The notes under the pieces were generated by a model. The model ran no database searches. It was not told the origin of the DNA and saw only the letters and a list, made by a program, of their open reading frames with translations. Shown here in pieces: positions 7,914-64,000 of a DNA stretch of 64,000 bases. The position numbers and the translations under genes were made by a program. Numbering within the stretch: position 1 is the first letter of the stretch; the number at the start of each line of letters is the position of its first letter. The stretch covers positions 211,301 through 275,300 of IMG/VR virus record IMGVR_UViG_3300020122_000238; one strand, 5' to 3'.

Positions 7914-8729
7914 ATGTATGACGATGCCTCGCTGGACGATTACTGGGCCATGTTGCGGCCCCCCGAGCCCATGCCGTCCCCTGTGATCTCCCTTGAGACC
8001 GCTACCGAATGGCTGAAAACCATTGGGGCTCCGAGACATTCTCCCCTCTTGGTAGTCCCTGGTACATCTGTGGAGCGTTGCAGCGTTTTTCGGGCTCTGG
8101 GGAAAGTCGTGGACAGCACCTACTTCGAGTGCGACCTGGAAAACGCCTCCTGGTTAGAGGTGGGTCTCGACACGACCATCGCAGCTCTCGTCTCCTGTCA
8201 GGACCTCGATCTGGAGGGCACCATTCGAACGATGGCTGACACGTCCCATTACCTGGAGCATGACGTGTACCGGATTCTCTGGGAAATTCGGTTCTTGCGT
8301 CGTGAAGATCGGCATCAAGCGGACGAGCTGTTCGATATCTTCCGGCGATTGGTCCGTGACACACAACTTCGAGAACATGAGGTTCGGAGGCTCCGGGACC
8401 TTGGCATCTCGAAGTTCATCTTCTCTTTCCGGGAGAAAGTGGAAGTGCTGTGCTTCCTCCGCACCCTCGCCTCTCAGAACGAAATCCCGAGTCGCCTGGT
8501 TCTTTCTTTCGACGGGTTGGACCAGGCCATACAAGCTGAGAACAAGGGGGTTCTTCGCCAGCTCGTGATGCTCATCTCTGAAGTCCGACGTTGGACGCTA
8601 ATCACCAGTTGCCCGATTGGCATCCTCCTGGGTTTTTCAGCGGCCCGAAGTAATACCGCAAAACTCCGCAAGCTCAATCAGAATCTCACCGCCGAAATGG
8701 AGGCCGGGCTCGCCTGGACCAAGTCATGA
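7914..8729 (+). CDS. hypothetical protein with N-terminal acidic-W tag
   Basis: Begins MYDDASLDDYWAMLRPPEP; GGTGTA 10 nt upstream. Confidence 0.75.
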   Translation: MYDDASLDDYWAMLRPPEPMPSPVISLETATEWLKTIGAPRHSPLLVVPGTSVERCSVFRALGKVVDSTYFECDLENASWLEVGLDTTIAALVSCQDLDLEGTIRTMADTSHYLEHDVYRILWEIRFLRREDRHQADELFDIFRRLVRDTQLREHEVRRLRDLGISKFIFSFREKVEVLCFLRTLASQNEIPSRLVLSFDGLDQAIQAENKGVLRQLVMLISEVRRWTLITSCPIGILLGFSAARSNTAKLRKLNQNLTAEMEAGLAWTKS

Positions 8730-9235
8730 TCCGGATCAATTTCACTTGCGATGTTGTCGAACTCGAACCGCTCAACACTGACGAGTACGACGGCCTGCTC
8801 ATGGTGATCTCCACAGCCACCACCCCGATTGGAGGGAATGACCAGGTGAAACATCAGGATACGGCGACGGGGGAATGGGACGACATCCCTGTTTCTGCGG
8901 GGGCCCGCTCAACAGGGGGGTTGGTCTTCCGGGAGCGGCAAGTCACTCTGCCGGGGAAGTACCTGATCCGCTCCGCGATCCGCAATGGGAAAGAGCCCTT
9001 CAGGACTTTCGACCTCTTCCTCGAACATCTGGGAGACCGAAATGCCCGCCTCACGGTCGAGCCTGGAAGCACCCTTGCGTTCTGGATCATGGGCAACTTC
9101 GACCCGATCTTGATCGGTGCAGAGCGTACGATCATTCACATCGAGAATGGGCAAATCACGTTGATCGACACAGGGAAGCCGAGCGATCAGCGCCGTCCGA
9201 CCGCCTGGGAGAAAATGGACGACGACGACATCTAG
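8726..9235 (+). CDS. hypothetical protein with C-terminal PTAW-acidic tag
   Basis: Ends RRPTAWEKMDDDDI; ATGA-coupled. Confidence 0.8.
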   Translation: MIRINFTCDVVELEPLNTDEYDGLLMVISTATTPIGGNDQVKHQDTATGEWDDIPVSAGARSTGGLVFRERQVTLPGKYLIRSAIRNGKEPFRTFDLFLEHLGDRNARLTVEPGSTLAFWIMGNFDPILIGAERTIIHIENGQITLIDTGKPSDQRRPTAWEKMDDDDI

Positions 9236-9238
9236 CTC

Positions 9239-9859
9239 TTGGTGTCCATAGAAGGGATGCCCCCTCGTCACCATCAACTAGACCCCCAAAGTGGAATGGG
9301 TATGAGCCCTCCGCACTGCCTCGTCTGTCGGGCCAGCTTCAACCCCAACGAGCCGCTCACCTCATGCGACCATATCTCGATCGACGACCTGAAGATCCAG
9401 ACAGTCTACGACATCGACATGGACGAGAAGCCCATCGGCATGGGGCTCTCGGGGGAGTGCTTCAACCTGAAGTGCCCCGACTGCAAGCAGACCTTCATGC
9501 AGCTCCGCAAGTCCATGCACGGGCTCTTCTATGGGTGCCCTTCCTACCCCGCGTGCAAGGGCACTCACGGGGCCAATGCGGACGGCGCTCCGAAGGGCAT
9601 CCCTGGAGACTTCGCGACCCGTCAGGCCCGTATAGCGGTTCACCTGGTCTTCGATCGTATATGGAATCAACCTGGCTCCAACCTGACCCGAATCCAGGCC
9701 TATACCTGGATGGCTTGGGAAATGAGGCTGGGAATCATGGAAGCCCATATCGCACGCTTCGACATTGAAATGTGCGAGAAGCTCGTCTCCCTGGTGAAAA
9801 AACACTTCGGGGTCACGAACGCGTGGGAAGCCATCCTCGACGACTCCATCTGGGATTGA
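9239..9859 (+). CDS. topoisomerase C4 zinc-finger / DUF3268-like protein with C-terminal tag
   Basis: CPDC...FYGCPSYPAC, RQARIAVHLVFDRIW, AYTWM, HIARFD..C; ends TNAWEAILDDSIWD; exact start uncertain. Confidence 0.7.
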   Translation: MVSIEGMPPRHHQLDPQSGMGMSPPHCLVCRASFNPNEPLTSCDHISIDDLKIQTVYDIDMDEKPIGMGLSGECFNLKCPDCKQTFMQLRKSMHGLFYGCPSYPACKGTHGANADGAPKGIPGDFATRQARIAVHLVFDRIWNQPGSNLTRIQAYTWMAWEMRLGIMEAHIARFDIEMCEKLVSLVKKHFGVTNAWEAILDDSIWD

Positions 9860-9883
9860 CGTCGTAAGACGCTACCCCGAAGG

Positions 9884-10108
9884 ATGGGTCCCCCAACAGC
9901 GTTTGCCGGGGGTTCATTTTGCGCCCGCGGACCCATGCGTCTTATCGACGGACCCTACGGCCGGTTCTACGGCTGCAAGCACTGGCCTGACTGTGTGTCT
10001 CGAATTCCGGCCGAGTATGACGGTACGCCGAAGTACCCGAAAAAGAAGCTGCCCCGAAGTCATTCGCGGGGCAGCTTCTTTCGGACGACTTCGACTAGTC
10101 GTTGGTGA
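9884..10108 (+). CDS. possible small C4 zinc-finger fragment
   Basis: MRLIDGPYGRFYGCKHWPDC resembles the upstream finger. Confidence 0.35.
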   Translation: MGPPTAFAGGSFCARGPMRLIDGPYGRFYGCKHWPDCVSRIPAEYDGTPKYPKKKLPRSHSRGSFFRTTSTSRW

Positions 10109-10541
10109 CGGTCTCGACCGTCCAGTAAGGCGGGAGGGGCTCGGCGATCCGAGCGGCCATGGCCTGGACGACGTCCAGGGGAGTTCCGTGCAGGTTCCGA
10201 GCTGCCGCCTTCTCGACAGAGCACTCGATGCGCAGGATGGCCGCCTCGTACCCGAAGGCCGAAGCCGCGAGCATGTAAGGCGCGATCTCGGCAACCGACG
10301 TGTTCGTGTTGTCGACGACGATGAGACTCCAGTCGGCCTCCAACGCAATGAGGAATCTCTTGAAGCACCTTCCGTGCGCTTCCCCGATCTTGGTGGGATC
10401 GAACTCATACTCCCCCGCCTCGTTGACCATGAATTGGTCGGTGGAGACGATGACCGCCTGGTTGACACCCTCGACCAGCTTTTTTGCAATCGTGGACTTC
10501 CCCGATCCCGACAGACCTTGCAAAACGATAACCTTCGGCAT
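10095..10541 (-). CDS. P-loop kinase, AAA_33 / N4BP2-like (polynucleotide-kinase-like)
   Basis: GLSGSGKST, STDQF, IVVDNTN, AARNLHGTP; class A motif upstream on the minus strand. Confidence 0.8.
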   Translation of the reverse strand: MPKVIVLQGLSGSGKSTIAKKLVEGVNQAVIVSTDQFMVNEAGEYEFDPTKIGEAHGRCFKRFLIALEADWSLIVVDNTNTSVAEIAPYMLAASAFGYEAAILRIECSVEKAAARNLHGTPLDVVQAMAARIAEPLPPYWTVETVTND

Positions 10542-10562
10542 GTGTACATCTACACAGGAAGA

Positions 10563-10605
10563 GGGAGGGGGATCAACCATATTTTCCCTGGTTGATCCCC
10601 CTCCC
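10563..10605. promoter_or_regulatory. back-to-back class A promoters forming a 17-bp inverted repeat
   Basis: GGGAGGGGGATCAACCA / TGGTTGATCCCCCTCCC; each TTGATC is 15 nt from (G/T)TGTA upstream of a divergent ATG. Confidence 0.75.
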
Positions 10606-10627
10606 GGTGTTTTTGTAAGACGACCAC

Positions 10628-12446: not shown

Positions 12447-12911
12447 ATGGCGATGAACCCCGACGCCGTAGCCGTGTGGCAAGACTTGAAGACATGGGCG
12501 ATCCCTATCTTCGAGTGGTGCAAGGTGCATCCCTGGGGTGTTCTTACGTTCAACTTGTTCTTCGTCCTCGGGTGTTTCGACTCCTACCGCAGAGGGGCTC
12601 GCAAATACCGGCGTCTGGCAGAAGCTCAACAACTTCGAGACAGCAAACTGATCCGGGGCCTGGAGCAAAATGTGGAAAGTCGCATCCGGCGCCTGGACCA
12701 AGTGCAGCAAGCGCTTGCGGATCTTCGAGCGCAAGTCGCGTTGATTCGACCTGGGGGTGAGACAACGCCTGAACTCTTCCCCGAGATCCCGTCGCCACCC
12801 AAGAAGGCTCCGCGAAAGTCTCGGGCAAAGAAGGTCCCGCCGGAGCCGACCACATGGCACTCAAAGCTCCTCGACGACGGGGATGACATTGGGACGGCCG
12901 AGAAGAAGTAG
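12447..12911 (+). CDS. membrane-anchored coiled-coil protein with C-terminal tag
   Basis: One TM segment, coiled coil, ends EPTTWHSKLLDDGDDIGTAEKK; motif spacing suggests start at 12453. Confidence 0.75.
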   Translation: MAMNPDAVAVWQDLKTWAIPIFEWCKVHPWGVLTFNLFFVLGCFDSYRRGARKYRRLAEAQQLRDSKLIRGLEQNVESRIRRLDQVQQALADLRAQVALIRPGGETTPELFPEIPSPPKKAPRKSRAKKVPPEPTTWHSKLLDDGDDIGTAEKK

Positions 12912-16198: not shown

Positions 16199-17008
16199 AT
16201 GGCCACCGTAATCGCCCAATGCAAGAGCTGTCATCAGATGATCTATTGGGAGGACCACATCGCCGGAGCGTGTTCCTGCCCTGAAGGCTCCTTGCGTCAG
16301 CTTCTCGCGCAGAAGCAACGTCGGCCGGCAACAATGGCTCGAACCGCGAGCCAAGCTCCAGTTCGTCAACAACTTCCGGACCTTACCCCCGAGATGCTCC
16401 TATCGAGCAGTGCCCTCCGAGAAATGCGAGCGGCCGAGGGCCACACGCATCGGATGCCTGCTCCTCGGCCTCCCCGAAATGAGGACAGGAACGCCTATCG
16501 GCGTGAGTATGCCGCCTCCTTCGACTCCGAGGATGAGCCCGCTGAAGACCCGGCGGCGTCCCTGGGGAGCCTGGAGGACATCTGGGGAGGGGCTGTGGCG
16601 AGGGATACCGGACGGCGAGGGAGCCTCGACATCGACTTCTCGACCGGGGAGCTGGATTACGAACCGCCTGTGCAGCAAGCACGGCCTTCGGGCATGGGAG
16701 CCGCCAGCCTTCCTCGCTTCAATGTCACCCGTCCTCCGGTGGATCAGACCGCGTTCCGCCGAGAGCTGGTCGGGGCCAACATGCGTGAGATCGGCCGGAC
16801 CCGAAACGGGCAGGTGATCTTCTCCGATCGGAGCACCCGCTCGGTTGATGAGCCCGCGCCTCGCCCCAGCTTCATCGAGCACACCTCCAGGACGGTGCCT
16901 GCCTCGCAAGCAAACGCCAGAACGGCCGCGATTCGAGCCGCGGAGCATGCGAAGCTCCCGACGGCGTTCGAGGTTCTACAGAGGCCCTTCCTCGAAGACG
17001 ACGACTGA
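16199..17008 (+). CDS. hypothetical protein (N-terminal Cys cluster, disordered) with C-terminal tag variant
   Basis: CKSC...CSC; ends LPTAFEVLQRPFLEDDD. Confidence 0.75.
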   Translation: MATVIAQCKSCHQMIYWEDHIAGACSCPEGSLRQLLAQKQRRPATMARTASQAPVRQQLPDLTPEMLLSSSALREMRAAEGHTHRMPAPRPPRNEDRNAYRREYAASFDSEDEPAEDPAASLGSLEDIWGGAVARDTGRRGSLDIDFSTGELDYEPPVQQARPSGMGAASLPRFNVTRPPVDQTAFRRELVGANMREIGRTRNGQVIFSDRSTRSVDEPAPRPSFIEHTSRTVPASQANARTAAIRAAEHAKLPTAFEVLQRPFLEDDD

Positions 17009-19864: not shown

Positions 19865-20347
19865 ATGCCTAAGCTCGACAAGAAACTCCGCCTGGAAGTC
19901 GCACAGACCGTGCTCGATGGGGGGTCCGTCCTCTTCCTCACTCCGAACTCAGAAATGAATGACCGGGTTGCGGACCTCTTCAGGAAGGCATTCGTGGAGA
20001 ACGCCATGGATGTCACAGGCTGCGCGGAACTCACCGCCCGCAAGCTCATGAAGCCCGAAGGCGCAAATCCGAGCTATGTCCAGCTCGCGAAAGGCCCCGG
20101 GCATGCCTTCTTCCACCCGAACCAGGACATGACCGCCGACGAAGAGATCGGGAACCCCACCTTCGTCTACTGGCCGACCGAGGGCGGGGACTACCAGAAG
20201 GTGCCCTATAACACATGGAAGCGAGAGCGTCGGGCTCACCTCTGGCGGCCGGTTCACCTGAAGGGACAGCTCCTTTGGGAAGACACGCCGGCTGTGATTG
20301 CGGGCCCGTCGAATGCGTGGGCCAAGATCCTGGAGGATGACCTGTGA
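19865..20347 (+). CDS. hypothetical protein with C-terminal tag
   Basis: Ends GPSNAWAKILEDDL; GGTGTA upstream. Confidence 0.8.
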   Translation: MPKLDKKLRLEVAQTVLDGGSVLFLTPNSEMNDRVADLFRKAFVENAMDVTGCAELTARKLMKPEGANPSYVQLAKGPGHAFFHPNQDMTADEEIGNPTFVYWPTEGGDYQKVPYNTWKRERRAHLWRPVHLKGQLLWEDTPAVIAGPSNAWAKILEDDL

Positions 20348-20580: not shown

Positions 20581-21002
20581 GCACGACGGCATGGGACCTG
20601 ATCCTGAACGATTTCGATGAAATCGAAGACCGGATCACGGCGGCCTGCCTCGCCTGCAAAGCCCGAGGGATTGTTGTCCAGTCTGGCGACTGGGGCGTCA
20701 CCTATGACGAAGACACCCACAAGTGGGTCCAGGGTACACCTTGGCGGGAGAGCACCTCTCTCCCTGTGAATCTCCTCGGCGCCTTGTTGCTCATCGAGAA
20801 CCCTTTCCCCGAGATGTACGTGTACGAGAACCGCACATGTTACGCGCCCACCGACACGGTGAGTAGACTTTTGGGCGTTGGGATCGCCTGGACTCTCTCA
20901 TTCTTCGCGGGGTGGGATGCAGCTCGGTTCCCCTCTTCGGGAGTCAGGACCGCCTATGACTTCGGGCAGCGGTTGGCAACAGAGATTTCATGTCCTCTGT
21001 GA
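20577..21002 (+). CDS. hypothetical protein with TAW-acidic tag at N-terminus
   Basis: Begins MSTTAWDLILNDFDE. Confidence 0.7.
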   Translation: MSTTAWDLILNDFDEIEDRITAACLACKARGIVVQSGDWGVTYDEDTHKWVQGTPWRESTSLPVNLLGALLLIENPFPEMYVYENRTCYAPTDTVSRLLGVGIAWTLSFFAGWDAARFPSSGVRTAYDFGQRLATEISCPL

Positions 21003-22409: not shown

Positions 22410-22709
22410 TCAGAAGTCTTCGTCTTCTTTTAGCAACCGCTCATGCCACGTCCGAATTTTTTGAGCCCGAAGTCTGGCGAGGGGGCTAGGAAACAGAACA
22501 TCATACCCACGCAACTCACTCCGGAATGGCCCTCTGTAGCCTTCTTTGAAGATGACACGAATTCTAAATGAGTCCCTCGTAAAAATGGACTCCAACACGG
22601 CTTCAACCATCGAATCAGAACGGAAAAGAGAGACAATATGACGGAAACGAGTTTTCTCCTCAATCGTGAAGGTAGGGAACTCCAAGTCCCAAACGACTTG
22701 ATTAGACAT
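22410..22709 (-). CDS. hypothetical protein (AT-rich) with C-terminal tag
   Basis: Ends IRTWHERLLKEDEDF. Confidence 0.7.
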   Translation of the reverse strand: MSNQVVWDLEFPTFTIEEKTRFRHIVSLFRSDSMVEAVLESIFTRDSFRIRVIFKEGYRGPFRSELRGYDVLFPSPLARLRAQKIRTWHERLLKEDEDF

Positions 22710-22710: not shown

Positions 22711-23106
22711 TCAGTCCTCCAGGATGGCATCCCAAACCGTGGGACCCTTCAAAGAATGAAACTGGTTGATAAAGTTTACCCATGAAGTAATTCGGAATTG
22801 TCTTGAATCATCGTGACTATAAGACAGCCAGCCATTTTTGATGGTCATAACGGAGACCATGTTTTTAAAATGTGTGGGATCCTTGTCTACAAAAACGGCG
22901 TCATGGTGTACCCAATGAGGAACGGGGGTGCCTTCATATTTCGGATGGAAAGGCGACCAAAAACGCTCAACTCTCTCAAGAGAAGTACATCCTGGTCGAC
23001 TCTCCCCCACGGCCAAAAGCCAGAGCCCATTGTCCGAGAAAGCCACGACCTCCGCCCAATACCCGGGCCCCTCAAGTTCCAACCAATCCCCAATTTCGTA
23101 GGCCAT
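22711..23106 (-). CDS. hypothetical protein (AT-rich) with C-terminal tag
   Basis: GGTGTA-N9-ATG; ends GPTVWDAILED. Confidence 0.7.
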   Translation of the reverse strand: MAYEIGDWLELEGPGYWAEVVAFSDNGLWLLAVGESRPGCTSLERVERFWSPFHPKYEGTPVPHWVHHDAVFVDKDPTHFKNMVSVMTIKNGWLSYSHDDSRQFRITSWVNFINQFHSLKGPTVWDAILED

Positions 23107-23969: not shown

Positions 23970-24350
23970 TTTGGGTACGCGAGCCTGAATCCCTATATGG
24001 TCAAGACTCGCGTACGTCGTCCGGTGGACCTTCCCAGTAATGGGTGAGCTACGATGCTCTTGAGCCATTCGACCGCGGAATCAACAGCGGGCAAACCCGG
24101 CGGGCGTGGTGGAAAGCCACGCCATTTTCTCTAGAACTCCTCGTCGAGCCTCTCCCACCCCGTGAGATACGGGAGTTTCGGTGGGGTGAGTGGCGGGGTT
24201 CAGGATTGGAGCAAGGCTCCACAAGAATCGAACCTACCCCGATTGGGAAGTAGGTTGCTATCTCCTTCGAACAACGCGTGCAGATGTAGAAGTGCTTTGC
24301 CCAAAGCCCAATCGCACCGGACTCAACCTGAGTCCGGTGCGATTGGGGGC
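23970..24350. ncRNA. candidate structured non-coding RNA (class unknown)
   Basis: Largest gap between convergent operons, with at least 8 hairpins including a 19-bp stem at 24307-24347. Confidence 0.35.
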
Positions 24351-24367
24351 AAAAGAGGTGCCCAGCG

Positions 24368-24733
24368 TTATACGTCGTCGCCATCAAGATGCTCCCAAAC
24401 CGTGGGGTTGGTCTCTGGCAGCTTCGGTTGAGCTTGCGCCATCGGGGGCAGAGTTGTTCTCAGAACGAGGCTCAGAAGCTCTGAATCACCCCGCGGTCGA
24501 GCTTGTGCCTGAAGCTGGGCTCGTAGCTCCCTGCGTTCTCGGATGATCCTCTCCAGGACCTCGACGGAGTTCTCGTCGCTGTCTTCCGCGTACCTTTGCA
24601 GACGTTCCGTGAGCTGCTTGAGGAGGACTGCATCTTCAGACTCCGTGTGAACGTAGGCAAGGAGCTTGCCTACGCCAATTGCTATCGCAATGAGCAGCAC
24701 CGCGAGACCAAGGGTAACAATGAAAGCGATCAT
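24368..24733 (-). CDS. membrane-anchored coiled-coil protein with C-terminal tag
   Basis: N-terminal TM, coiled coil, ends NPTVWEHLDGDDV. Confidence 0.8.
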   Translation of the reverse strand: MIAFIVTLGLAVLLIAIAIGVGKLLAYVHTESEDAVLLKQLTERLQRYAEDSDENSVEVLERIIRERRELRAQLQAQARPRGDSELLSLVLRTTLPPMAQAQPKLPETNPTVWEHLDGDDV

Positions 24734-25122
24734 CCGATCTCCTCTTCATCCGAGAGCAAGGCCGCAGCTCCCGCCGGTTGCGGGGGAGGAGTAGGTTCTT
24801 CAAACACATCTCCTCCCGCCCAGACCACTTCACCCCCACGAGTACAAATATAGCCAAAGCAAGAGGCCTTAAGCCCCCTCACGATTTCCCGAGTGTCATC
24901 GAGAACCTGACTGTGAGGTGGCGTCTCGTTGCCATCCTTGAAGGTTGTCCCTGTCCCCCCCACAGTCAGAGACAGGAGAGCAGAGTACTTGGTGTTCTGC
25001 GAGAGCTTCTTGGTTGATGCGAGGGCGCCCACTGTATACCCTTTGGCCACCAATCCCGCAATAATGCGAGGGATGTGCATCTCGGATATGAGGGTCACCC
25101 AAAGTCGACACGTAGCTTCCAT
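24730..25122 (-). CDS. hypothetical protein, acidic C-terminus
   Basis: Ends PPPQPAGAAALLSDEEEIG. Confidence 0.7.
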   Translation of the reverse strand: MEATCRLWVTLISEMHIPRIIAGLVAKGYTVGALASTKKLSQNTKYSALLSLTVGGTGTTFKDGNETPPHSQVLDDTREIVRGLKASCFGYICTRGGEVVWAGGDVFEEPTPPPQPAGAAALLSDEEEIG

Positions 25123-28940: not shown

Positions 28941-29497
28941 AACGCTGGGATCCTGACATCGAGGATTACATCGACGAGACGAATGGCGAGGAGCCGGATA
29001 TCGAAGACGATATCCGCTTCAAGCTCGATATGGTCGAGATGATCCGTACCGAGTTGGGAGACAAGAAAGCAGCTTTGGCTCAAACCACGCTGAAGATCCC
29101 CGAGCTGGACTATTCTATGTCCTTCCACGTCGGGATGTGGCTGCGCCATGCTGAAGACGAAGTAACCAGAGTTCGTCTCGAAATATTGGAGGTTCGAGAC
29201 GAAACCTGTCTCGTCTACTGCGTCGGGTGGGAGGAGCCGACTGAGAAAACAAAGAAGATACTCTGTTGGTATAGAATATCTGAACCCCCCTCGACGGCTC
29301 TGCCATCTTGGGTGAAGCCGGGTGCGTACTTCGGCAGCAATTCTCGCAACAGATGGTGCATTCTTACCATCAAAGAGGGCATGTTCACAGCGAAGCGTAC
29401 ACGCGATCAGTACTTCGCCACCTGGACATCAGAGGACCTGTTCGACGAGTGCCGTCCCATCCTCACGGCATGGGAACAGCTCGACGACTTGGGATAG
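28937..29497 (+). CDS. hypothetical protein with C-terminal tag
   Basis: Ends ILTAWEQLDDLG. Confidence 0.75.
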   Translation: MKRWDPDIEDYIDETNGEEPDIEDDIRFKLDMVEMIRTELGDKKAALAQTTLKIPELDYSMSFHVGMWLRHAEDEVTRVRLEILEVRDETCLVYCVGWEEPTEKTKKILCWYRISEPPSTALPSWVKPGAYFGSNSRNRWCILTIKEGMFTAKRTRDQYFATWTSEDLFDECRPILTAWEQLDDLG

Positions 29498-29814: not shown

Positions 29815-30387
29815 ATGTTGACGAAGAAGATCCTGACGGCGACGAAGCATTACCTGAGCAAGACCCCCGAAGAGAACCGCGCCTATGGCCTGGTTACGGA
29901 TGGGAAGATCAACCCCGGCACCTTCCGCTTCATGCCGGTGCTGGCGTGGCTTCGCAAGAAGCCCGAGAGGAGCAGGATTGTCCTCTCGGGCTTCTTGCTG
30001 CGCATGACGGAAGGTGCTTTCGTGGGAGGCCTCGACTGGTCCATCCCGCTGAACCCGGAAACCGAGAACGACGCCGCGAACCTTCTCTCGTCCTTCGGGT
30101 GGGACAATCGAGTGTGGCCTTCAGACCCGGGCTGGCCCGACGATCTGCCGGATGAGGAACACACGCTGCACGGGATGCTCAAGAAGAAGGGCATCTTGGA
30201 GACGCTCACGTTCCCGCCGAAGGAATCGGGCAACAGGGTGATGACGCTTCATGTGCTGAAGGTGTCGAACCCCTTCCCGCTGCCGATCCTGGTTGCTGAT
30301 GAAGACCGTCAGGAGGTGGCCCCCGAGATGCTCTCGAAACTTCGAGAGCTGGTCGCCGACCCGAGCTGCTTCTCGCTGTCCTCCTAG
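29815..30387 (+). CDS. hypothetical protein
   Basis: GGTGTA-N10-ATG. Confidence 0.75.
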   Translation: MLTKKILTATKHYLSKTPEENRAYGLVTDGKINPGTFRFMPVLAWLRKKPERSRIVLSGFLLRMTEGAFVGGLDWSIPLNPETENDAANLLSSFGWDNRVWPSDPGWPDDLPDEEHTLHGMLKKKGILETLTFPPKESGNRVMTLHVLKVSNPFPLPILVADEDRQEVAPEMLSKLRELVADPSCFSLSS

Positions 30388-30977
30388 TCGTCCGCGAGAA
30401 GGTGCCCCCACGCGTTGTCAGGTCTACCTTTGGGCCCTCTCGTCCGAAGCAACCTGACAATGGGGAGATCGGCTGCCGCAGCCAGGGAATCATCCAGCTC
30501 CCTGGTTGCGATGGAGCACTGGTCGATGTGGTGCGCGGGATTTGAGATGTCCCGCACCGTGATGAGCCACACCCCCTTCTTCTTCTGAATGTAGACCCCA
30601 GCCCGCCAGGTGTTCATGACCTTCGTGTTGGGGTCTTGGGCTCCCGTGGCGACATCGAATGGCTCTGGGATCAAAGCCATCGTGTTCTCCGTCTCACGGT
30701 AGAGATGTTTCCCGAAGGGCCGTCGCGTGTACTCCGTGCTGATCTGGTTCAGCGGAATTTGAGTCTCATGGCAGACAGTATCCCACCGCGTAAGAATTCC
30801 CCCAGGCACGAGAGTGGTGATTGGCCCTGTAGTTCTTGACCCGTGGGGGGTCGTCAGGTCAGGCCGCCAGGTCACGATCCCATCAACCTCGGAGGTCTTC
30901 AGCGATCGAATCACAACATGACCGGGGCACATGTCCCCCAAAATCATGACAGGCTTCTGCATCAGGACAAGGATCAT
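30384..30977 (-). CDS. hypothetical protein with C-terminal tag
   Basis: Ends PDNAWGHLLADD; GGTGTA-N10-ATG. Confidence 0.7.
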   Translation of the reverse strand: MILVLMQKPVMILGDMCPGHVVIRSLKTSEVDGIVTWRPDLTTPHGSRTTGPITTLVPGGILTRWDTVCHETQIPLNQISTEYTRRPFGKHLYRETENTMALIPEPFDVATGAQDPNTKVMNTWRAGVYIQKKKGVWLITVRDISNPAHHIDQCSIATRELDDSLAAAADLPIVRLLRTRGPKGRPDNAWGHLLADD

Positions 30978-31011: not shown

Positions 31012-31731
31012 ATGGGATCGACCCCCAAAAAGACCCCTGTGAAGTACCACTCCTGGTGGACCGAGAAAGCCGTACCTCATCGGAACATGTTGATGGTGAG
31101 GTACGACTACGGGCACTCCAGGGTCGATAGATCCTTGTACGGATGTCTGGTCGTCGGAGACGACCAGACGCTCCTCTGGCTCAGCAGTGAGGAGATCCGG
31201 GAAAAGTGGAAGCCCTTCCGCGTACCCTTCTCGGCAGTTATTCCTCTGGGGGTGTGGCCCCAGTGGGTGACTCGACGAGATGTCCAATGGCACACAGCGC
31301 CAGACCATCCTCGGCGAATGACCATCGTCTCGTACAAGCCCAAGAGCTTCTGGCTTGCAACCACCACCGTGGTCGAGCCCTTCGAGGGCCCAAGATTCCA
31401 AGTCTACAGAGCAACGCAGAGTTTCAAGGTTGATCACGAGATGGTGCAATACGGGGACCATCTCACCCTCGATAGAGACTACAACGTGTGGACCGTGCGT
31501 AAGAAGAGCATCGCTCGGTTCTGCAACCGGGAGATCACAGCCTTCCTTGCTATGCAATACCTCATCCCCGTGATTCAACCGAGCGGGATGCCCTTCGATT
31601 GGAGCATTCAGAAGTTCACCACACGCTTCTGGAGTCTCCACACTTTCGCTCAGAACCATCGGCCTCTGATGCCCTCAAAACCGACCGCTTGGGACGTTGT
31701 GATGGCCGACGAATTCGAGGAAATGGTGTAG
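31012..31731 (+). CDS. hypothetical protein with C-terminal tag
   Basis: Ends KPTAWDVVMADEFEEMV. Confidence 0.75.
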   Translation: MGSTPKKTPVKYHSWWTEKAVPHRNMLMVRYDYGHSRVDRSLYGCLVVGDDQTLLWLSSEEIREKWKPFRVPFSAVIPLGVWPQWVTRRDVQWHTAPDHPRRMTIVSYKPKSFWLATTTVVEPFEGPRFQVYRATQSFKVDHEMVQYGDHLTLDRDYNVWTVRKKSIARFCNREITAFLAMQYLIPVIQPSGMPFDWSIQKFTTRFWSLHTFAQNHRPLMPSKPTAWDVVMADEFEEMV

Positions 31732-32286: not shown

Positions 32287-32608
32287 AATGTGGGCTGGGG
32301 GGCCCCTCTACCCTGACTGGTTGGTCATCAACCAACTCGTTGAGACGACGGCAAGACACCCAGGGATACGACAACAATCAGTCATTACCAGGATCACTGA
32401 CGGGTTGGTGTACGTCCGATCAAATACCGGCATCGGAGATATTTGGTATCGAGCAGAGCACTTCGTGGACGAATGGCGGGTGCTTCATACCCCCCTGAAG
32501 AACGATCTCGCTCCCGAGGACTACAGGTGGGAGCCCAAGCCTGTCGAGCCCCCCAAGCCCGCTCCGACGTGGCATGAGCTCCTCATTGACGATGACTTCG
32601 ACATCTAG
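32276..32608 (+). CDS. hypothetical protein with C-terminal tag
   Basis: Ends APTWHELLIDDDFDI. Confidence 0.75.
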   Translation: MPPRMWAGGPLYPDWLVINQLVETTARHPGIRQQSVITRITDGLVYVRSNTGIGDIWYRAEHFVDEWRVLHTPLKNDLAPEDYRWEPKPVEPPKPAPTWHELLIDDDFDI

Positions 32609-32633
32609 TCGAAGTCATCGTCAATGAGGAGCT
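32577..32633. repeat. 26-bp perfect inverted repeat encoding the same C-terminal peptide in two convergent genes
   Basis: AGCTCCTCATTGACGATGACTTCGAC-ATCTA-GTCGAAGTCATCGTCAATGAGGAGCT. Confidence 0.95.
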
Positions 32634-33321
32634 GCTCCCAGGCAGTGGGCCAGAAGATGTGGACCCTGGGGGTGGCCGGAGGGGGAGGGGGCTGCGTCGG
32701 CACCCCGGGAAGGTACCTCCCCATCAGAGAGGGGGTCTCGGTCGGATCGAACTCCGGGACTTCAACTCGACGTCGCATGTTTTCCAAAGCCCGCGTGTTG
32801 AAGACCATGTCCCCAACGTGTTCGTGAGCCGTTAACCCCTCGCCGGAAATCCGATCCATGGCGTCGAAGACCCGCTGGTCCTCTTCCTCTCGAAGACGCT
32901 CTTGCGCGAACATCTCTCGTGTCCTCACAACATCCTGCCACACAGTATTAGGGGCAACCTGCACGAAGGAGGGCGTAAACTCCTCTCGGAAAACCGAGTA
33001 CCTGGGGTCAGGAGAGGGTTCTCCAATCCCGTAGACGTTGCGGAACGTTTCTTGGGAGACGCACAGATCCACGTGGACCATACGCTCCATGATCTCCATT
33101 TCCTCCGATAGGTTGAGGGATGAGGGCAGCAAAGGAAGCAACTGTATGGGGGGTGCCGGTAGGATGGGGAGCGCCGGTAGGACCGGTAGGATGGGGAGCG
33201 CCGGTAGGACCGGTAGGAGCCCCATCCTCCTGATCACTTCATTCGCACGCTCACGTATGTCTTGGAGCACCAGATGCTCCAGAACTCGCCGGATGAGAGG
33301 GACACCATCACGAGGGGGCAT
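32605..33321 (-). CDS. hypothetical protein with Pro/Leu repeat and C-terminal tag
   Basis: Ends WPTAWEQLLIDDDFD; GGTGTA-N9-ATG. Confidence 0.75.
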   Translation of the reverse strand: MPPRDGVPLIRRVLEHLVLQDIRERANEVIRRMGLLPVLPALPILPVLPALPILPAPPIQLLPLLPSSLNLSEEMEIMERMVHVDLCVSQETFRNVYGIGEPSPDPRYSVFREEFTPSFVQVAPNTVWQDVVRTREMFAQERLREEEDQRVFDAMDRISGEGLTAHEHVGDMVFNTRALENMRRRVEVPEFDPTETPSLMGRYLPGVPTQPPPPPATPRVHIFWPTAWEQLLIDDDFD

Positions 33322-36283: not shown

Positions 36284-36562
36284 TTAAAAATCGTCGTCTT
36301 CCAAGAGGAAGGCCACATGTGGGGGAGGCAGAAGCCGTAACCGACTCACGAGCACGCCTGCATGTGTCGTCTCCCCATACTGAAGATCCAGGGGGCATAC
36401 AGTGACCCACCCCTTCTGGAAATGATACCCGGGAGTGGAGTTGTCGCGCACTCCCGAAATCAATCGAACTTTTCTCCCCTGCCAACTATAACCCAAGCGA
36501 CCTTCGACGATGTATATCTCGGGAGAAAAGTTGGCACGTGGTTGAGGACAGTCTTCGCTCAT
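36284..36562 (-). CDS. hypothetical protein with degenerate C-terminal tag
   Basis: Ends PPPHVAFLLEDDDF; ATGA-coupled. Confidence 0.65.
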   Translation of the reverse strand: MSEDCPQPRANFSPEIYIVEGRLGYSWQGRKVRLISGVRDNSTPGYHFQKGWVTVCPLDLQYGETTHAGVLVSRLRLLPPPHVAFLLEDDDF

Positions 36563-41823: not shown

Positions 41824-42227
41824 TACAATCCGCTCTCCTGGGGGGTCTTGCGCACACGGGCCTTGGTCATGCTGAGCGCAGCATGACTCACGGTATCCTT
41901 GCCCAAGACCTTGAACTCGTGATCCACGATGAGCAACCCCACCCGGTTGTCCCAGCCGATGGAAAAACGGTAGAGCCAGGCGTCATCGACCTTGAGGATG
42001 GTCTTCAGATGAGTCCAGGCTTGAGCGCTTTTGGCCAGATCGAAAGCCCACAGGACAGCGCCCAGAGCGGTACATCGAACGGGGACATTCTTGTCCAACC
42101 CCGTCCAATCGAACATCGCTCCACGGTCGAGCTGGATCCCTTGAGCTTCGGCCGTGTCGCACGCTTCCCCGATGATCTGGAGGGCCGGCTTCCGAGGCGG
42201 GACATAGAGAACGTTCAGTTCAATCAC
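41823..42227 (-). CDS. hypothetical protein
   Basis: GTG start 11 nt after GGTGTA. Confidence 0.7.
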   Translation of the reverse strand: MIELNVLYVPPRKPALQIIGEACDTAEAQGIQLDRGAMFDWTGLDKNVPVRCTALGAVLWAFDLAKSAQAWTHLKTILKVDDAWLYRFSIGWDNRVGLLIVDHEFKVLGKDTVSHAALSMTKARVRKTPQESGL

Positions 42228-42900
42228 CTTTTGGGTTTACACCGAATTCGGGGGAATCGAGCTGGTCCCAAGATGTTGGACGTCGATTGTACTCCGCCTC
42301 AGCCCGACGGCGCTTTTTCTCTTCTCGACGCCGGACCTGGTCATCGGTGAGAGACGGAGTATTTGCAGCTTGAAGCTCGACGCCATCAACCCAAGGGGGG
42401 CGTTGGGGCGTATATTCCTCAAGAACCACGTCAACCGCAAAAGACAGCGTTGCAACCTGTACTTCTCTTGGGGTTCTTTCGGCGGAACCAGCGAAGTTCA
42501 CCTCGAAGGGACCATCTTGCCGTTCTTGCAGGATGGTAAAGGCATCCTGAAATAAAGTGATATCTCTTTCGATGATGGTGTGTGTACCCCCCAAAATGTG
42601 TACTCCAAACCTGTCAATGGAAGAGACCATTGACAGGTTACATACAAGTCCAGCTTGTCGGAGCTGTCGGCTGGCTTCAAAAGGAGAAATAGGCACTACT
42701 ACTTCCGACACTGGAGCAGGCTGCGGCGGAGGAGACCAACCATGGGGCTTGCGAATCACCCGCGTGAGCACCCCGTTCTGCTCTGAGAAGGCCTGGCTGC
42801 TTTGAATCGCCTCGTGCTCATGCACAGAAGCGAGAGACGGAAGGTCAACCCACCCGGCACGGGCCGCACGAGACTGGACGCAGTAGAAGCGAGAAGGCAT
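42220..42900 (-). CDS. hypothetical protein with near-C-terminal tag
   Basis: RRPTSWDQLDSPEF; GGTGTA-N10-ATG. Confidence 0.75.
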   Translation of the reverse strand: MPSRFYCVQSRAARAGWVDLPSLASVHEHEAIQSSQAFSEQNGVLTRVIRKPHGWSPPPQPAPVSEVVVPISPFEASRQLRQAGLVCNLSMVSSIDRFGVHILGGTHTIIERDITLFQDAFTILQERQDGPFEVNFAGSAERTPREVQVATLSFAVDVVLEEYTPQRPPWVDGVELQAANTPSLTDDQVRRREEKKRRRAEAEYNRRPTSWDQLDSPEFGVNPKGD

Positions 42901-45955: not shown

Positions 45956-46189
45956 TTACACCACAAAGCCACGATACTCGATCGCGTCCAGCTTGGGGGT
46001 GCCTTCTCCGCGAAGGATGAGCCCTACCTCATCCTTCGGTCTCGGGTAGCGGGGGAAGTCGATGCCGACGAGCTGCCAGGACCGATCCCCTTGATGCAAG
46101 AAATCTCCCACTCTGATGGGGGTCTCGGGCAACCCCTTGATGAGAGCGATCATCCGGTCCTTGGTGTGGAAAATCGCGAAGATGTTCAA
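45956..46189 (-). CDS. hypothetical protein
   Basis: Coupled ORF. Confidence 0.65.
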   Translation of the reverse strand: MNIFAIFHTKDRMIALIKGLPETPIRVGDFLHQGDRSWQLVGIDFPRYPRPKDEVGLILRGEGTPKLDAIEYRGFVV

Positions 46190-46881
46190 AATTCATCCTC
46201 CCCCAAAAGCGCGCGGCCCAACGTCGAGAGATGGGGGCCGAAGGGCTTCGCCGGGGCCAGCTCATTTCTGGATTCGACCCTGGAGTCCAGAGTTCTCGAA
46301 AAGACGTAGCAGAGCCGGGGGTGGCTGAGTTGTCGAAGAGCCTGTTGCAAGTCTTTGGCTGCTCGGGGCGCAAGGTGCATGTCCTCGAACGCGAAGACGA
46401 ACAGGGGGTTCTCGTTTCGCAAACCACCCGCGATGAACTCCGTAGCCTCATTGACGTATTCGTACCAGACCGAGTGTCTATCCGTGGCGGCCCACCTCGG
46501 CGGTTCGAGTTCAAACAGTACGCTCACGTACTGCCGCCAGGCGTTCTGCACTCGCTCCGAGCTGTTCTCGTTCCACCCCATAGTCCGAAATCGACTCAAA
46601 ACGACAGCATTCAACGCCGACATCAGGTAGAAAGGCAGGGAGGTGGTGTTTCGAGTAACTTCGTTGATCTCGAAGTTATCCCAGACTCGCACAGGGATGA
46701 TGTTGTGGTACAGGCACTCGTTCAACAGCTCGCCGATAGTACAGGCGCCATGGAGATCCAGGGTGATCGGTTGTCCCCGTCCCCTCAGATCCACGAAGTC
46801 TTGTCGTCTGTGGGACTCGTTGCGCCAAGGACGGTCGAGCTGACGAAGAGCATCATGAAGTTGCTGGGGTCTGATTTCCAC
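46186..46881 (-). CDS. hypothetical protein with degenerate C-terminal tag
   Basis: Ends LSTLGRALLGEDEF; GGTGTA-N10-GTG. Confidence 0.7.
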   Translation of the reverse strand: MEIRPQQLHDALRQLDRPWRNESHRRQDFVDLRGRGQPITLDLHGACTIGELLNECLYHNIIPVRVWDNFEINEVTRNTTSLPFYLMSALNAVVLSRFRTMGWNENSSERVQNAWRQYVSVLFELEPPRWAATDRHSVWYEYVNEATEFIAGGLRNENPLFVFAFEDMHLAPRAAKDLQQALRQLSHPRLCYVFSRTLDSRVESRNELAPAKPFGPHLSTLGRALLGEDEF

Positions 46882-50664: not shown

Positions 50665-50847
50665 ATGATGGGACGCTTCAGCACCATCCTGGAGGCCCAA
50701 GTTCTGGGTCATACCCTATGGTGCACCCACTGGGAGCTTGGCCTGGTTGACGTCGCGGTCTTCAAGAAGGGGCACATCCTCTGGCGACCCTTCGGAGACG
50801 TCAAACCACGCACAGCGTGGTTTGTGCTCGACAACGACGACTTCTAA
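50665..50847 (+). CDS. small protein with C-terminal tag
   Basis: Ends PRTAWFVLDNDDF. Confidence 0.65.
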   Translation: MMGRFSTILEAQVLGHTLWCTHWELGLVDVAVFKKGHILWRPFGDVKPRTAWFVLDNDDF

Positions 50848-56727: not shown

Positions 56728-56880
56728 AGGGGCGGGAGAGGCACGAACGTTTCCCAGTTGGGGGTTACCATATGTCGGATAGGTCCTTGTCAAGGCGCTC
56801 CCAGGCTGTAGAACCACGCAGCTCTTGGTGTATAGTTTCTTTCGGTTGATCCCGAGCGTGTATTCCCCTGTAGGACCCCC

Positions 56881-62722: not shown

Positions 62723-63034
62723 ATGCCCACCGACCTCGTTCTTGCTCAGAAAATCCTCGATTTCGTGAATGCCGAGTGCGGCAACTCGTTCCTGACACTG
62801 AAGGACATTCAGAGCATCGCCAAAGACGAGCCTGTCTTAGCCGCGTGTAAGTACTGGCAGTTCTTGCGGCTGATCCTCGAAGAGGGCGCCGTCAACTTCG
62901 GCTTCCTCAACCAGCACATCTTCATGCGTCGCCAGTACAAAGCCCTTCTGGCGAAGATCGAGCGATGGGACGCCTGGGGAGATGAGAACCTCCCCGGCTA
63001 CGATGGTGCTCACACCTACTTCCTCGGTTTCTAA
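62723..63034 (+). CDS. hypothetical protein
   Basis: TCGATC-N15-GTGTA upstream. Confidence 0.7.
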   Translation: MPTDLVLAQKILDFVNAECGNSFLTLKDIQSIAKDEPVLAACKYWQFLRLILEEGAVNFGFLNQHIFMRRQYKALLAKIERWDAWGDENLPGYDGAHTYFLGF

Positions 63035-63036
63035 CC

Positions 63037-63327
63037 ATGAGCCCGTACCGCGCTTCCCCACCTCTCCCCACTCAAGACCCCAAGCCTTTCAAGAGAAGCT
63101 GGAGAGCCAGGCTTCGACGCTTTTTGCGCCACTTCGCGGGGGCCTACAAGGGGAGCTTCCTCGCTCGCTACCCGGTGCGCTGCCCCGAGTGTGGGAAGCG
63201 AAGCTGGGACCCCCACGAGGAGCGTAAGACCCCCTACAAGCACCAAATGCGATGGGCTCGGGTTGTGATGAACGCCTACCGCTGCGGGCACCGTGGGACC
63301 CTCTCGTGTACGGTCAACTTCAGCTAG
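63037..63327 (+). CDS. basic zinc-ribbon protein
   Basis: CPECG...CGH...C. Confidence 0.6.
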   Translation: MSPYRASPPLPTQDPKPFKRSWRARLRRFLRHFAGAYKGSFLARYPVRCPECGKRSWDPHEERKTPYKHQMRWARVVMNAYRCGHRGTLSCTVNFS

Positions 63328-63343
63328 CGGTGTAAAAAGGGCC

Positions 63344-63622
63344 ATGCCGAAAGAAATCGGAGTATATCGAGCATCCCCTATGAAGGCGCACGTCTGGGAC
63401 ACTGAGTACGTGGACGGCGGAGCCGTCGGGGATGGGTACTTTTACCGCTGTCAGGGCTGTGGAGCTTCAGGCGGCCCTGTGTGGGACGAATCCAAGCCCA
63501 AACCCACCAACTGGACGTTTCTCGCAGGAACGGGACTTCAGCTCGATCCTCATGATTGTGAGGCGGCAAGAGCACAGATCAAAAACTATCGGGCAGACGT
63601 TGAAAAGGAATGGGCTCGCTGA
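63344..63622 (+). CDS. hypothetical protein (CQGC)
   Basis: GGTGTA-N9-ATG. Confidence 0.65.
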   Translation: MPKEIGVYRASPMKAHVWDTEYVDGGAVGDGYFYRCQGCGASGGPVWDESKPKPTNWTFLAGTGLQLDPHDCEAARAQIKNYRADVEKEWAR

Positions 63623-63658
63623 TACGGCCCCCTCCGACGTTGAACCCCGATAGAGACG

Positions 63659-63719
63659 TCGAAGACGACCTATGAGTCAGGTGCCACGGAATGGCACCTG
63701 ACTCATAGGTCGTCTTCGA
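63659..63719. repeat. 28-bp perfect inverted repeat at convergent junction
   Basis: TCGAAGACGACCTATGAGTCAGGTGCCA-CGGAA-TGGCACCTGACTCATAGGTCGTCTTCGA. Confidence 0.95.
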
Positions 63720-64000
63720 GAAGAACCACCCAGCACGGTTTCCCCTCAGAAGTGCTTCTGAGGGGTTCCTTCCCGAGGATCTGCCGCACCTCTTCGAGAT
63801 AGCTTTTGATCGCTGGTTTATGATCCGTGAAGTGAGGGGTGTTGTAATGAGACCTGAAGGCGCCCACCGTCCATGCCAGGACGACATCCCCTCGATACGC
63901 TCCATTGAGCAACTGTCGAGGGTCTTTCCACGGCAGCCATTCTCCAGGGTGTAGTTGCACACCAGCTCGAAGTGCGTCGAACCACGCTTGAAGCGACGTG
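63703..64000 (-). CDS. 5'-partial hypothetical protein with C-terminal tag
   Basis: Frame open to window edge; ends KPCWVVLLEDDL. Confidence 0.7.
   Translation of the reverse strand, partial: TSLQAWFDALRAGVQLHPGEWLPWKDPRQLLNGAYRGDVVLAWTVGAFRSHYNTPHFTDHKPAIKSYLEEVRQILGKEPLRSTSEGKPCWVVLLEDDL

Follow-up and report, generated by a model that had tools for sequence, protein, structure and literature searches.

Several described systems rely on a short terminal peptide that is shared by otherwise unrelated proteins or that serves as a docking site. In T4 and RB69, gp43, gp33, and gp55 have C-termini that bind the sliding clamp gp45; bacterial QL[SD]LF motifs and the PIP box likewise mediate docking of unrelated proteins to one hub through a short hydrophobic/acidic peptide in a flexible N- or C-terminal region. 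The C-terminal tip of SSB (D-D-D-I/L-P-F) and the acidic tails of T7 gp2.5 and gp4 are docking peptides in which an acidic run on a disordered linker ends in a hydrophobic or aromatic residue. Bacterial microcompartment (BMC) encapsulation peptides, encapsulin cargo-loading peptides, the T4 capsid targeting sequence, and the pyrenoid Rubisco-binding motif mark cohorts of unrelated proteins for one destination. Here, we analyzed a 64,000-nucleotide stretch (the window; positions 211,301 to 275,300 of IMG/VR record IMGVR_UViG_3300020122_000238) of the 275-kb contig of an uncultured soil jumbo phage. About one in five genes in this arm of the genome ends, or in two cases begins, with the same short acidic tryptophan-leucine peptide, predicted to be helical and conserved across a clade of related phages. 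No description of this peptide was found in the literature.

Terminal enrichment of a shared acidic peptide

The observation made in the initial annotation, that a common C-terminal tag is present on about 15 to 20 unrelated proteins, was confirmed and extended. All 16 termini and 3 weaker cases that it listed are present in the sequence at the stated coordinates, and we added two N-terminal copies, two copies in frameshifted carriers, and at least two copies upstream of the window. The consensus derived from 40 tags is [P/R]-[T/N]-A-W-[E/D]-[R/K]-[L/I]-L-[E/D]-D-D-[D/F]. A strict regular expression, W..[LIVM].{0,3}[DE][DE], gave 23 hits in six frames, 13 of which lie within 16 residues of a stop after an open reading frame (ORF) of at least 50 amino acids. 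Within ORFs of at least 66 amino acids, 12 hits were terminal and 7 internal, although terminal positions account for only 12% of all positions (binomial P = 2e-7). Shuffling of the last 40 residues of each ORF gave a mean of 0.58 hits and a maximum of 5, compared to 12 observed. A position-specific scoring matrix built from the tags gave 20 hits in the window, 16 of them terminal and acidic, whereas the controls gave 4 hits with 0 terminal in 197 kb of Virus Rctr197k (G+C, 63%) and 5 hits with 0 terminal in 224 kb of other loci.

The claim that codons differ between copies also held. Among 513 identical-residue positions between tag pairs, 241 share the codon, compared to 222 expected from codon usage, consistent with selection on the peptide and not on a DNA repeat. 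The exception is the convergent pair at 32570/32640, which forms a palindrome with 33-nt arms. The carriers are otherwise dissimilar, with no BLASTP hit between tag-less bodies better than E = 0.03. In contrast to the suggestion that the label is phage-wide, the tag is concentrated in the last ~80 kb of the contig and is rare in the adjacent 35 kb, in an analysis that covered about 100 kb of the 275-kb genome.

Carriers of the tag and their relatives

The carriers include a Ser/Thr kinase, several Top1-type zinc-ribbon proteins, two coiled-coil proteins predicted to be membrane anchored, and many ORFans. The tag was retained in all eight carrier families for which more distant orthologues (27 to 60% identity) were available. 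Gene 8726-9235, predicted to encode an all-beta protein, ends with the tag PTAWEKMDDDDI at 9197..9232 (+). The tag is conserved in eight orthologues at 26 to 78% identity, and 4 of the 14 invariant columns lie inside the 13-residue tag. AlphaFold modeled the tail as a helix at residues 160 to 165 (pLDDT ~51) after a low-confidence linker, off an all-beta domain at pLDDT 80 to 95. The Zn_ribbon_Top1 + DUF3268 protein 9302-9859 carries TNAWEAILDDSIWD at 9815..9856 (+). Homologues of this protein, the one carrier with a Pfam domain, keep a tag at 44 to 83% identity, while those at 43% or less lack it and end at the domain. A small second zinc-ribbon gene (about 9860-10098) carries a tag variant, PKSFAGQLLSDDFD, at 10054..10095 (+). 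In the window this variant is out of frame with the N-terminal part because of a C4 versus C5 run, but the gene is intact in the relative L002 (L numbers denote sequences of related phages).

Gene 12447-12911 encodes a hydrophobic segment followed by a coiled coil and carries PTTWHSKLLDDGDD, followed by 7 more residues, at 12846..12908 (+); the orthologue in L019 keeps the tag. Gene 16199-17008 carries a variant, PTAFEVLQRPFLEDDD, at 16958..17005 (+), with Phe in place of Trp, and this substitution is conserved in the L019 orthologue, which ends with a PTSF...DNDEF variant. The tag SNAWAKILEDDL of gene 19865-20347, at 20309..20344 (+), is kept by orthologues in L019 and L021. Of the two N-terminal copies, TNAWEALMADDD at 3171..3206 (+) occupies residues 17 to 28 of the Ser/Thr kinase 3123-4037 and is conserved as ADAWGAILDDS in the 45%-identical L019 kinase, with a helix at residues 17 to 24 in a low-confidence model. 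The other, MSTTAWDLILNDFDEIED at 20583..20630 (+), lies at the start of gene 20577-21002 and is supported by the window sequence alone.

On the minus strand, gene 22410-22709 carries IRTWHERLLKEDEDF at 22413..22457 (-), and gene 22711-23106 (probable start) carries PTVWDAILED at 22714..22743 (-), with the L019 orthologue ending PSVWDHLLNDEAPSDF. A frameshifted small CxxC gene (about 24134-24387) carries LTGWERLDEEF at 24134..24166 (-) and is intact in the relative L005 at 11270-11626. Gene 24368-24733, with a predicted N-terminal transmembrane helix and a coiled coil, carries PTVWEHLDGDDV at 24371..24406 (-), and this tag is identical in an orthologue that is only 48% identical overall. Three variants lack an aromatic residue, corresponding to the weaker cases in the initial annotation. 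The first, AGAAALLSDEEEIG of gene 24730-25122 at 24733..24774 (-), is identical in a 38% orthologue and is conserved in L005 and L019, the latter ending ATILDDRDEFE. The second, HVAFLLEDDDF at 36287..36319 (-), belongs to a probable gene, 36284-36562, that was not called by JGI. The third is the weak variant STLGRALLGEDEF of gene 46186-46794 at 46189..46227 (-).

Other tags are LTAWEQLDDLG of gene 28937-29497 at 29462..29494 (+), DNAWGHLLADD of gene 30384-30977 at 30387..30419 (-), PTAWDVVMADEFEEMV of gene 30979-31731 at 31681..31728 (+), PTSWDQLDSPEF followed by 7 more residues on gene 42220-42900 at 42223..42279 (-), and RTAWFVLDNDDF of the 59-amino-acid gene 50668-50847 at 50809..50844 (+). 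Gene 32237-32608 carries APTWHELLIDDDFDI at 32561..32605 (+), and its last 11 codons form one arm of the palindrome with the convergent neighbor 32605-33321, which carries PTAWEQLLIDDDFD at 32608..32649 (-); the L005 orthologue of 32237-32608 keeps a different tag, PTWHEHLDDEDDFD. Two further cases are less certain, since 56765-57013(-) and 63703-63960(-) were not called as genes by JGI. The former ORF carries a possible tag, STAWERLDKDLSDIW, at 56768..56812 (-) and is overlapped by a promoter-like site on the other strand. In the latter, KPCWVVLLEDDL at 63706..63741 (-) belongs to a probable gene, 63703-63912, whose last codons are overlapped by a perfect hairpin with 28-nt arms.

A putative docking motif and alternative readings

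With moderate confidence, we interpret the tag as a clade-specific short linear docking motif. In this view, it would be a prenucleated amphipathic helix with a Thr/Asn-x-x-Glu/Asp capping box (Thr/Asn at -2 and Glu/Asp at +1, following established helix N-capping rules), a binding face of Trp at position 0 and Leu/Ile at +3 and +4, and an acidic run that often ends in a hydrophobic residue. The motif hangs on a flexible Pro/Lys/Arg-rich tether at a protein terminus; linkers are enriched in Pro (14% versus 7%) and in Lys plus Arg (20% versus 11%). Its likely role would be to bring a cohort of otherwise unrelated, early-like accessory proteins to one common site, a hydrophobic groove with a basic rim on a hub protein of the phage or its host. 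A DNA metabolism or transcription hub, or a phage-built scaffold or compartment tethered by the membrane carriers, are only candidates. Our analysis establishes the motif, its terminal enrichment, its conservation, its modular presence or absence, and its placement on a tether, while binding itself, the sharing of one partner by all carriers, and the nature of that partner are inferences, and no receptor was identified. Lineage-wide variants, namely, Thr-Arg-Trp in three tags of the relative L026 and Tyr for Trp in both tags of the relative L011, might suggest that all tags in a genome track one partner, but these partly involve paralogues, and the evidence is weak. The carriers are also almost all ORFans, which offers no functional theme against which this reading could be checked.

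The interpretation given in the initial annotation was partly supported. Selection on the peptide, unrelated carriers, the anatomy of a docking motif on a flexible tether, and the lack of a prior description all held, and the existence of nontagged homologues in other phages, which had been proposed as a test, was borne out by the DUF3268 zinc-ribbon family. Its central claim of one common receptor is plausible but remains an inference. The phage-wide distribution was not supported, and a degron that needs a free C-terminus and a capsid or ejection route were disfavored, as follows.

It is possible, although unlikely, that the tag is a timing degron recognized by a host or phage AAA+ protease or adaptor so that a cohort of early proteins is removed together. 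The placement is terminal, exposed, and flexible, the carriers sit in an ORFan-rich, early-like arm, and adaptor-mediated delivery would tolerate either terminus. However, the same motif occurs at the N-terminus of the kinase, where it is conserved, and between 6 and 27 residues follow the Trp, so a free-carboxylate signal of the ssrA, Tsp, or PDZ type does not fit. An acidic, Trp-centered helix is not known to resemble any degron class, and no protease or adaptor gene was seen in the window.

A capsid or ejection-route signal, docking cargo to the scaffold or capsid interior so that the proteins are injected with the DNA, is doubtful. Shared packaging peptides have precedents in the T4 capsid targeting sequence and encapsulin cargo-loading peptides, and many carriers are small. 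However, two carriers are bitopic membrane proteins with a predicted N-terminal transmembrane helix and positive-inside residues that place the tag in the cytoplasm, others are putative DNA-binding zinc ribbons and a kinase with an N-terminal copy, and no structural genes lie nearby. Equally doubtful is an intramolecular acidic tail that acts as a DNA mimic or autoinhibitor, as in SSB, T7 gp2.5, or Hfq, with each tail folding back on its own protein. Several carriers are Top1-type zinc-ribbon (ssDNA-binding type) proteins followed by a linker and an acidic tip, which copies SSB architecture, but the same Trp-x-x-Leu-Leu face is conserved on unrelated folds, AlphaFold does not dock the tail on its own domain, and carriers include membrane and all-beta proteins with no DNA-binding signature. 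A translated nucleic acid element (terminator, recombination site, or RNA motif) or a chance or compositional artifact is largely refuted, since although two tags overlap long hairpins (32570-32640 and 63659-63719), most have none, codons differ as expected from codon usage, the peptide is conserved while the DNA diverges in orthologues, and controls of similar G+C have no terminal copies.

Comparison with described terminal peptides

Sliding-clamp-binding tails are the closest phage precedent for the logic of the tag, in that a short peptide at either terminus is shared by unrelated proteins. One possible carrier in L026 is an RNase HII, an enzyme that carries a C-terminal PIP box in archaea. 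However, the tag has no conserved Gln, its core is Trp-x-x-Leu-Leu followed by Asp-Asp-Asp, its ~20 carriers are mostly ORFans and not replication proteins, and no clamp gene was seen in the sequence available. The acidic run and hydrophobic end recall the SSB tip, and some tags in related phages end in EDDPF, DKDPF, or DKDLF. In comparison, in SSB one tail binds many partners, whereas here many proteins carry one tail; the upstream Trp-x-x-Leu-Leu helix is essential to the motif, the end residue is variable, N-terminal copies exist, and the carriers are not OB-fold SSBs.

Compartment-targeting peptides are similar in that one short, usually helical peptide on a linker, at either terminus, marks a cohort of unrelated proteins, which for the pyrenoid motif includes membrane proteins. 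Their sequences are unrelated to the tag, no shell, encapsulin, or scaffold gene lies in the window, and the membrane-anchored carriers argue against enclosure in a capsid. Eukaryotic acidic-hydrophobic motifs, such as LIR ([W/F/Y]-x-x-[L/I/V]) and the p53-type activation helices that bind MDM2 or RPA70N, also have a Trp-x-x-Leu core with flanking acidic residues and a helix that forms on binding to a groove with a basic rim. In this prokaryotic virus, however, the acidic residues follow the core and do not precede it, and there is no Atg8 or MDM2 counterpart, so that the likeness is one of chemistry only.

Terminal enrichment of the peptide and its genomic setting

The 64-kb window lies at the end of a 275,300-bp contig (IMGVR_UViG_3300020122_000238), with window base 1 at about contig base 211,301, and has a G+C content of 58%. 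The only public sequencing run that holds part of it is a soil metagenome. No near relative was found among GenBank phages, and the close relatives are two IMG/VR contigs of 350 kb and 128 kb. A scan of genome contigs returned no relatives in cellular genomes and no clue to the host, and no tRNAs were found in the window. Recognizable genes include a PurA/PurZ-like adenylosuccinate synthetase, a Ser/Thr kinase, a peptidoglycan-binding lysin, a 2H phosphoesterase, two endonuclease VII genes (18101-18565 and 39079-39633, minus strand), an ADP-ribosylglycohydrolase (40843-41823, minus strand), a Bax-inhibitor-1/YccA-family membrane protein (47392-48135; Pfam E = 1e-44), and DUF4419, with a weak GmrSD_N hit at 59964-60362; almost everything else is ORFan. 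The synthetase (1645-3123, JGI start 1807; phrog_1211; 40% identity to cluster-C mycobacteriophage genes) lies directly upstream of the kinase, and the phage may make 2-aminoadenine DNA. The Bax-inhibitor-1 family modulates the FtsH protease in E. coli. The C terminus of the ADP-ribosylglycohydrolase (LWDNSLWED) is a doubtful relative of the tag.

The initial annotation described a shared acidic, tryptophan-containing peptide at the ends of otherwise dissimilar proteins, and this observation held: all of the termini that it listed are present in the sequence. A strict regular expression (Trp, two residues, an aliphatic residue, up to three residues, and two acidic residues) matched 23 times in the six-frame translation, and 13 of these matches lie within 16 residues of a stop at the end of an ORF of at least 50 aa. 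Within ORFs of 66 aa or more, 12 of 19 matches fall in the last 16 residues, which make up 12% of positions (P = 2e-7), whereas shuffling the last 40 residues of every ORF gave 0.58 matches on average and never more than 5. A weight matrix made from the tags found 20 sites in the window, 16 of them terminal with an acidic run. In comparison, the same matrix found 4 sites, none terminal, in the 197-kb Virus Rctr197k (G+C 63%), which shares a 39%-identical homologue of gene 10628-11953, and 5 sites, none terminal, in 224 kb of other retrieved loci. Rctr197k was first considered a relative that might carry the tag; it has none and was used as a negative control.

The initial annotation had also inferred, from codons that differ between most copies, that selection acts on the peptide and not on a DNA repeat, and this is supported. 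At 513 positions where two tags share a residue, 241 use the same codon, while codon usage alone predicts 222. The single exception is the convergent gene pair ending at 32608 (plus strand) and 32605 (minus strand), whose last 11 codons form the two arms of a palindrome (32570-32640; 33-nt arms at 91%, 5-nt loop). In L005, a related locus, the same two genes end in different tags and there is no palindrome, so the window copy looks like a local gene conversion or a bidirectional terminator that grew into both reading frames. A second hairpin (63659-63719; 28-nt arms at 100%, 5-nt loop) also overlaps the last codons of a tagged gene. Carrier gene 32605-33321 additionally contains a perfect 27-nt tandem duplication (33156-33209), which encodes its repeated Leu-Pro-rich segment.

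By BLASTP the carriers are unrelated, as the initial annotation had proposed; with the tags removed, no pair scored better than E = 0.03. Pfam recognized only the Top1-type zinc ribbon plus DUF3268 in 9302-9859, and PHROGs recognized the same gene and nothing else among the tag carriers.

Sequence features, conservation, and distribution

We compiled 40 tags from the window and from related loci. Numbered from the Trp as position 0, they show Pro/Arg at -3, Thr/Asn at -2, Ala at -1, an invariant Trp at 0, Glu/Asp at +1, Arg/Lys at +2, Leu/Ile at +3, and Leu at +4, followed by Glu/Asp-Asp-Asp. A hydrophobic residue often lies near the end, and between 6 and 27 residues follow the Trp. Thr/Asn at -2 with Glu/Asp at +1 is the classical helix capping box, and Trp at 0 and Leu at +3 and +4 would lie on one helical face. 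The 15 residues before the tag are enriched in Pro (14%, versus 7% in the protein bodies) and in Lys+Arg (20% versus 11%). An AlphaFold model of the protein of the tagged gene starting at 8726, built from 8 orthologues, has a predicted all-beta domain (pLDDT 80 to 95), a linker at about 58, and a six-residue helix exactly on Ala-Trp-Glu-Lys-Met-Asp at about 51, which is not packed on the domain. This is the anatomy of a short linear motif on a tether. A Foldseek search of this model against PDB gave nothing below E = 0.02, only generic Ig-like sandwiches.

The tag is not strictly C-terminal. The kinase (3123-4037) carries it at residues 17 to 28, and it occupies the same place in the 45%-identical kinase of locus L019, a 144-kb contig syntenic with window 1.6-25 kb. 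A model of the kinase from 3 sequences reached only pLDDT 48 and is not usable beyond a hint of a helix at the tag. Gene 20577-21002 also begins with the motif. So a free C-terminal carboxylate is not part of the signal.

Orthologues in the close relatives keep the tags, and in the more diverged ones (48%, 38%, and 49% identity) the tag is the best-conserved stretch. A metagenome scan seeded with the zinc-ribbon family returned 27 loci. Loci with a homologue at 44% identity or more (L019 together with L020-L027) all have tags, on that gene and on its neighbors, and locus L010, found separately, behaves the same way. Loci with more distant homologues have neither tags nor tagged neighbors, and there the zinc-ribbon protein stops at the end of DUF3268. 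All eight window carrier families that have an orthologue in these more distant phages keep the tag. In the 8726 family, at 26 to 36% identity between clades, 4 of the 14 invariant columns lie in the tag. In L019 the zinc-ribbon gene (10442-10798) reads through its tag (GPSAWTHLEEDPF) into about 100 further residues, making the tag internal, which may reflect a lost stop codon or a fusion. Two lineages show genome-wide variants: three tags in L026 read Thr-Arg-Trp, and both tags in locus L011 have Tyr for Trp. This is what would be expected if all tags in a genome follow one partner, although some of these genes are paralogues and the evidence is weak.

Three carriers have a single-base frameshift just upstream of the tag (window ~10045-10060 and ~24170-24200, minus strand, and L005 ~1990). 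We considered programmed frameshifting but rejected it as unsupported, since these are single-base differences in C-runs of the Pro-rich linker relative to orthologues that are intact in each case, and our way of detecting them is biased toward this position; they may be assembly errors, strain variants, or decaying genes. The Ser/Gly/Asp-rich tail of 25199-26365 (minus strand), which ends in Asp-Trp and is conserved in L019, was likewise considered as a related signal and rejected. This protein, with a signal peptide and a transmembrane helix, heads an operon whose last three genes carry tags; it looks like a TPM/YgcG-type protein, a family that typically has such tails, although Pfam gave no hit. 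An untagged conserved protein (7306-7821), with orthologues in L019, L021, L024, L010, and L011, has a near-C-terminal motif, Pro-x-Trp-Leu/Met-Arg-x-Lys-Leu-Leu/Ile, a basic counterpart of the tag without the acidic run.

JGI called roughly 120 genes in the window, and 20 to 24 of them carry the tag or a variant. In the 35 kb upstream (contig 176-211 kb) only about two strong copies and two weak ones were found. Within the sequence examined, which excludes the remaining ~175 kb of the contig, the tag therefore marks one ORFan-rich, two-stranded arm next to the contig end and not the whole phage. A promoter-like motif, GTTGATC-N16/17-TGTAG, occurs 12 times in the window against 0 expected (539-566, 1164-1191, 10550-10577 on the minus strand, 11949-11976, 23407-23434, 36140-36167 on the minus strand, 50261-50288, 51285-51312, 56845-56873, 59152-59179, 59474-59501, and 60713-60740). 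Where the downstream sequence was inspected, it ends roughly 5 to 10 nt before an ATG or GTG start codon, which suggests a phage promoter class with leaderless or nearly leaderless transcripts; most genes directly downstream are untagged.

Possible roles of the tag

The carriers offer some indication of function. Two of them (24368-24733 and 12447-12911) have an N-terminal hydrophobic helix followed by basic residues, then a coiled coil, and then the tag, which should therefore face the cytoplasm. This architecture recalls the phi29 membrane organizer p16.7. At least three families of Top1-type zinc ribbons carry the tag, and in L026 an RNase HII ends in a weak version of it. A kinase with the motif at its N terminus fits the idea of docking an enzyme to its target. 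Together this favors recruitment to a common hub, and the zinc ribbons and RNase HII give a faint hint toward DNA metabolism.

The tag is most likely a docking motif for one partner, a reading that we hold with moderate confidence. The sequences themselves establish a real, conserved, clade-specific terminal peptide; that it binds a partner, and that this partner is common to all carriers, is inferred. The interpretation in the initial annotation, a phage-wide address label routing a cohort of proteins to one receptor, is thus partly supported: the docking anatomy fits, whereas the phage-wide distribution does not within the sequence examined. Among the alternatives, which are progressively less likely, a degron of the ssrA type or another C-terminal class would require a nonpolar extreme C terminus recognized through its free carboxylate and functional only at that end, whereas the tags have acidic tails of variable length and a conserved N-terminal copy. 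A capsid-packaging signal is also unlikely, because the membrane carriers argue against enclosure in a capsid. An intramolecular acidic tail ranks lower still; the modeled helix of the 8726 protein is not packed on its own domain. A nucleic-acid element is least likely, given codon sharing close to that predicted from codon usage.

A broader and more tentative possibility, which we consider unlikely but compatible with the evidence, is that the tag is a phage-encoded protein-sorting code. In this view, one terminal peptide would recruit roughly a fifth of the accessory proteome of a clade of soil jumbo phages, including enzymes, DNA-binding proteins, and membrane tethers, to a single hub or to a phage-built compartment or scaffold. 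It would be the first such linear address code described for bacteriophage proteins, comparable to encapsulation peptides or the pyrenoid Rubisco-binding motif.

Considering that jumbo-phage genomes are dominated by ORFans with no handle on function, a conserved label of about 12 residues shared by about 20 of them could be used to fish out a hub that the phage evidently cares about and to assign a whole cohort of unknown proteins to one process in a single step. If the partner is a host machine, the tag would be a compact natural ligand for it; if it is a phage scaffold or compartment, this would show that phages use linear sorting signals, which have not been found for the phage nucleus. The motif could also serve as a portable recruitment tag.

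Comparison with known docking and targeting peptides

The tag was not found in Pfam, PHROGs, or PDB (a PDB profile search gave 0 hits), and full-text literature searches found no description of it. A profile of the tag run against 1.84 billion proteins returned only 6 hits, all translated repeats or repeat proteins with several matches each, and was uninformative. A word-index search restricted to the tail of one protein (P0001) found only the query itself, and an ESM Atlas search with a 30-residue tail gave a best score of 0.54, which is no lead.

In its chemistry the tag resembles the SSB C-terminal tip and eukaryotic acidic-hydrophobic helices. The SSB tip is an extreme C-terminal D-D-D-[I/L]-P-F with a terminal Phe and a free carboxylate, carried by an OB-fold single-stranded-DNA-binding protein. 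In the tags, the last residues vary (I, D, L, V, G, F, and K), 6 to 27 residues follow the Trp, two copies are N-terminal, and no carrier matches an SSB family in Pfam or PHROGs. The [W/F/Y]-x-x-[L/I/V] core of the LIR/AIM motif is present, with Trp in 40 of 40 compiled tags and Leu/Ile/Val at +3 in 35 of 40. However, the acidic residues of the LIR/AIM motif, which binds Atg8/LC3, lie upstream of the core, whereas here the acidic run lies downstream at +5 to +8 and the upstream residues are Pro/Lys/Arg-rich. The T4-type capsid targeting sequence is an N-terminal peptide of about 10 residues on soluble internal head proteins that is removed by the prohead protease; in contrast, the tags are mostly C-terminal and two carriers are predicted membrane proteins.

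In its logic, that of many unrelated proteins carrying one terminal peptide for what would be one hub, the tag is like clamp-binding tails (T4 gp43, gp33, and gp55 on gp45; bacterial QL[SD]LF and PIP motifs) and compartment-targeting peptides. The clamp-binding motifs have a conserved Gln at the first position followed by an aliphatic/aromatic pattern, and no Gln column appears among the 40 tags. Clamp-binding motifs are carried by replication or repair proteins of a genome that encodes or uses a clamp. The carriers include at least three zinc-ribbon families and one RNase HII with a weak tag, but most are ORFans, and the replication module lies outside the sequence examined. No shell or encapsulin gene appears among the Pfam hits for the called genes of the window, with about 175 kb of the genome lying outside the sequence examined. 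With BMC encapsulation peptides and encapsulin cargo-loading peptides the tag shares a short predicted helix on a flexible linker, at either terminus of otherwise unrelated proteins.
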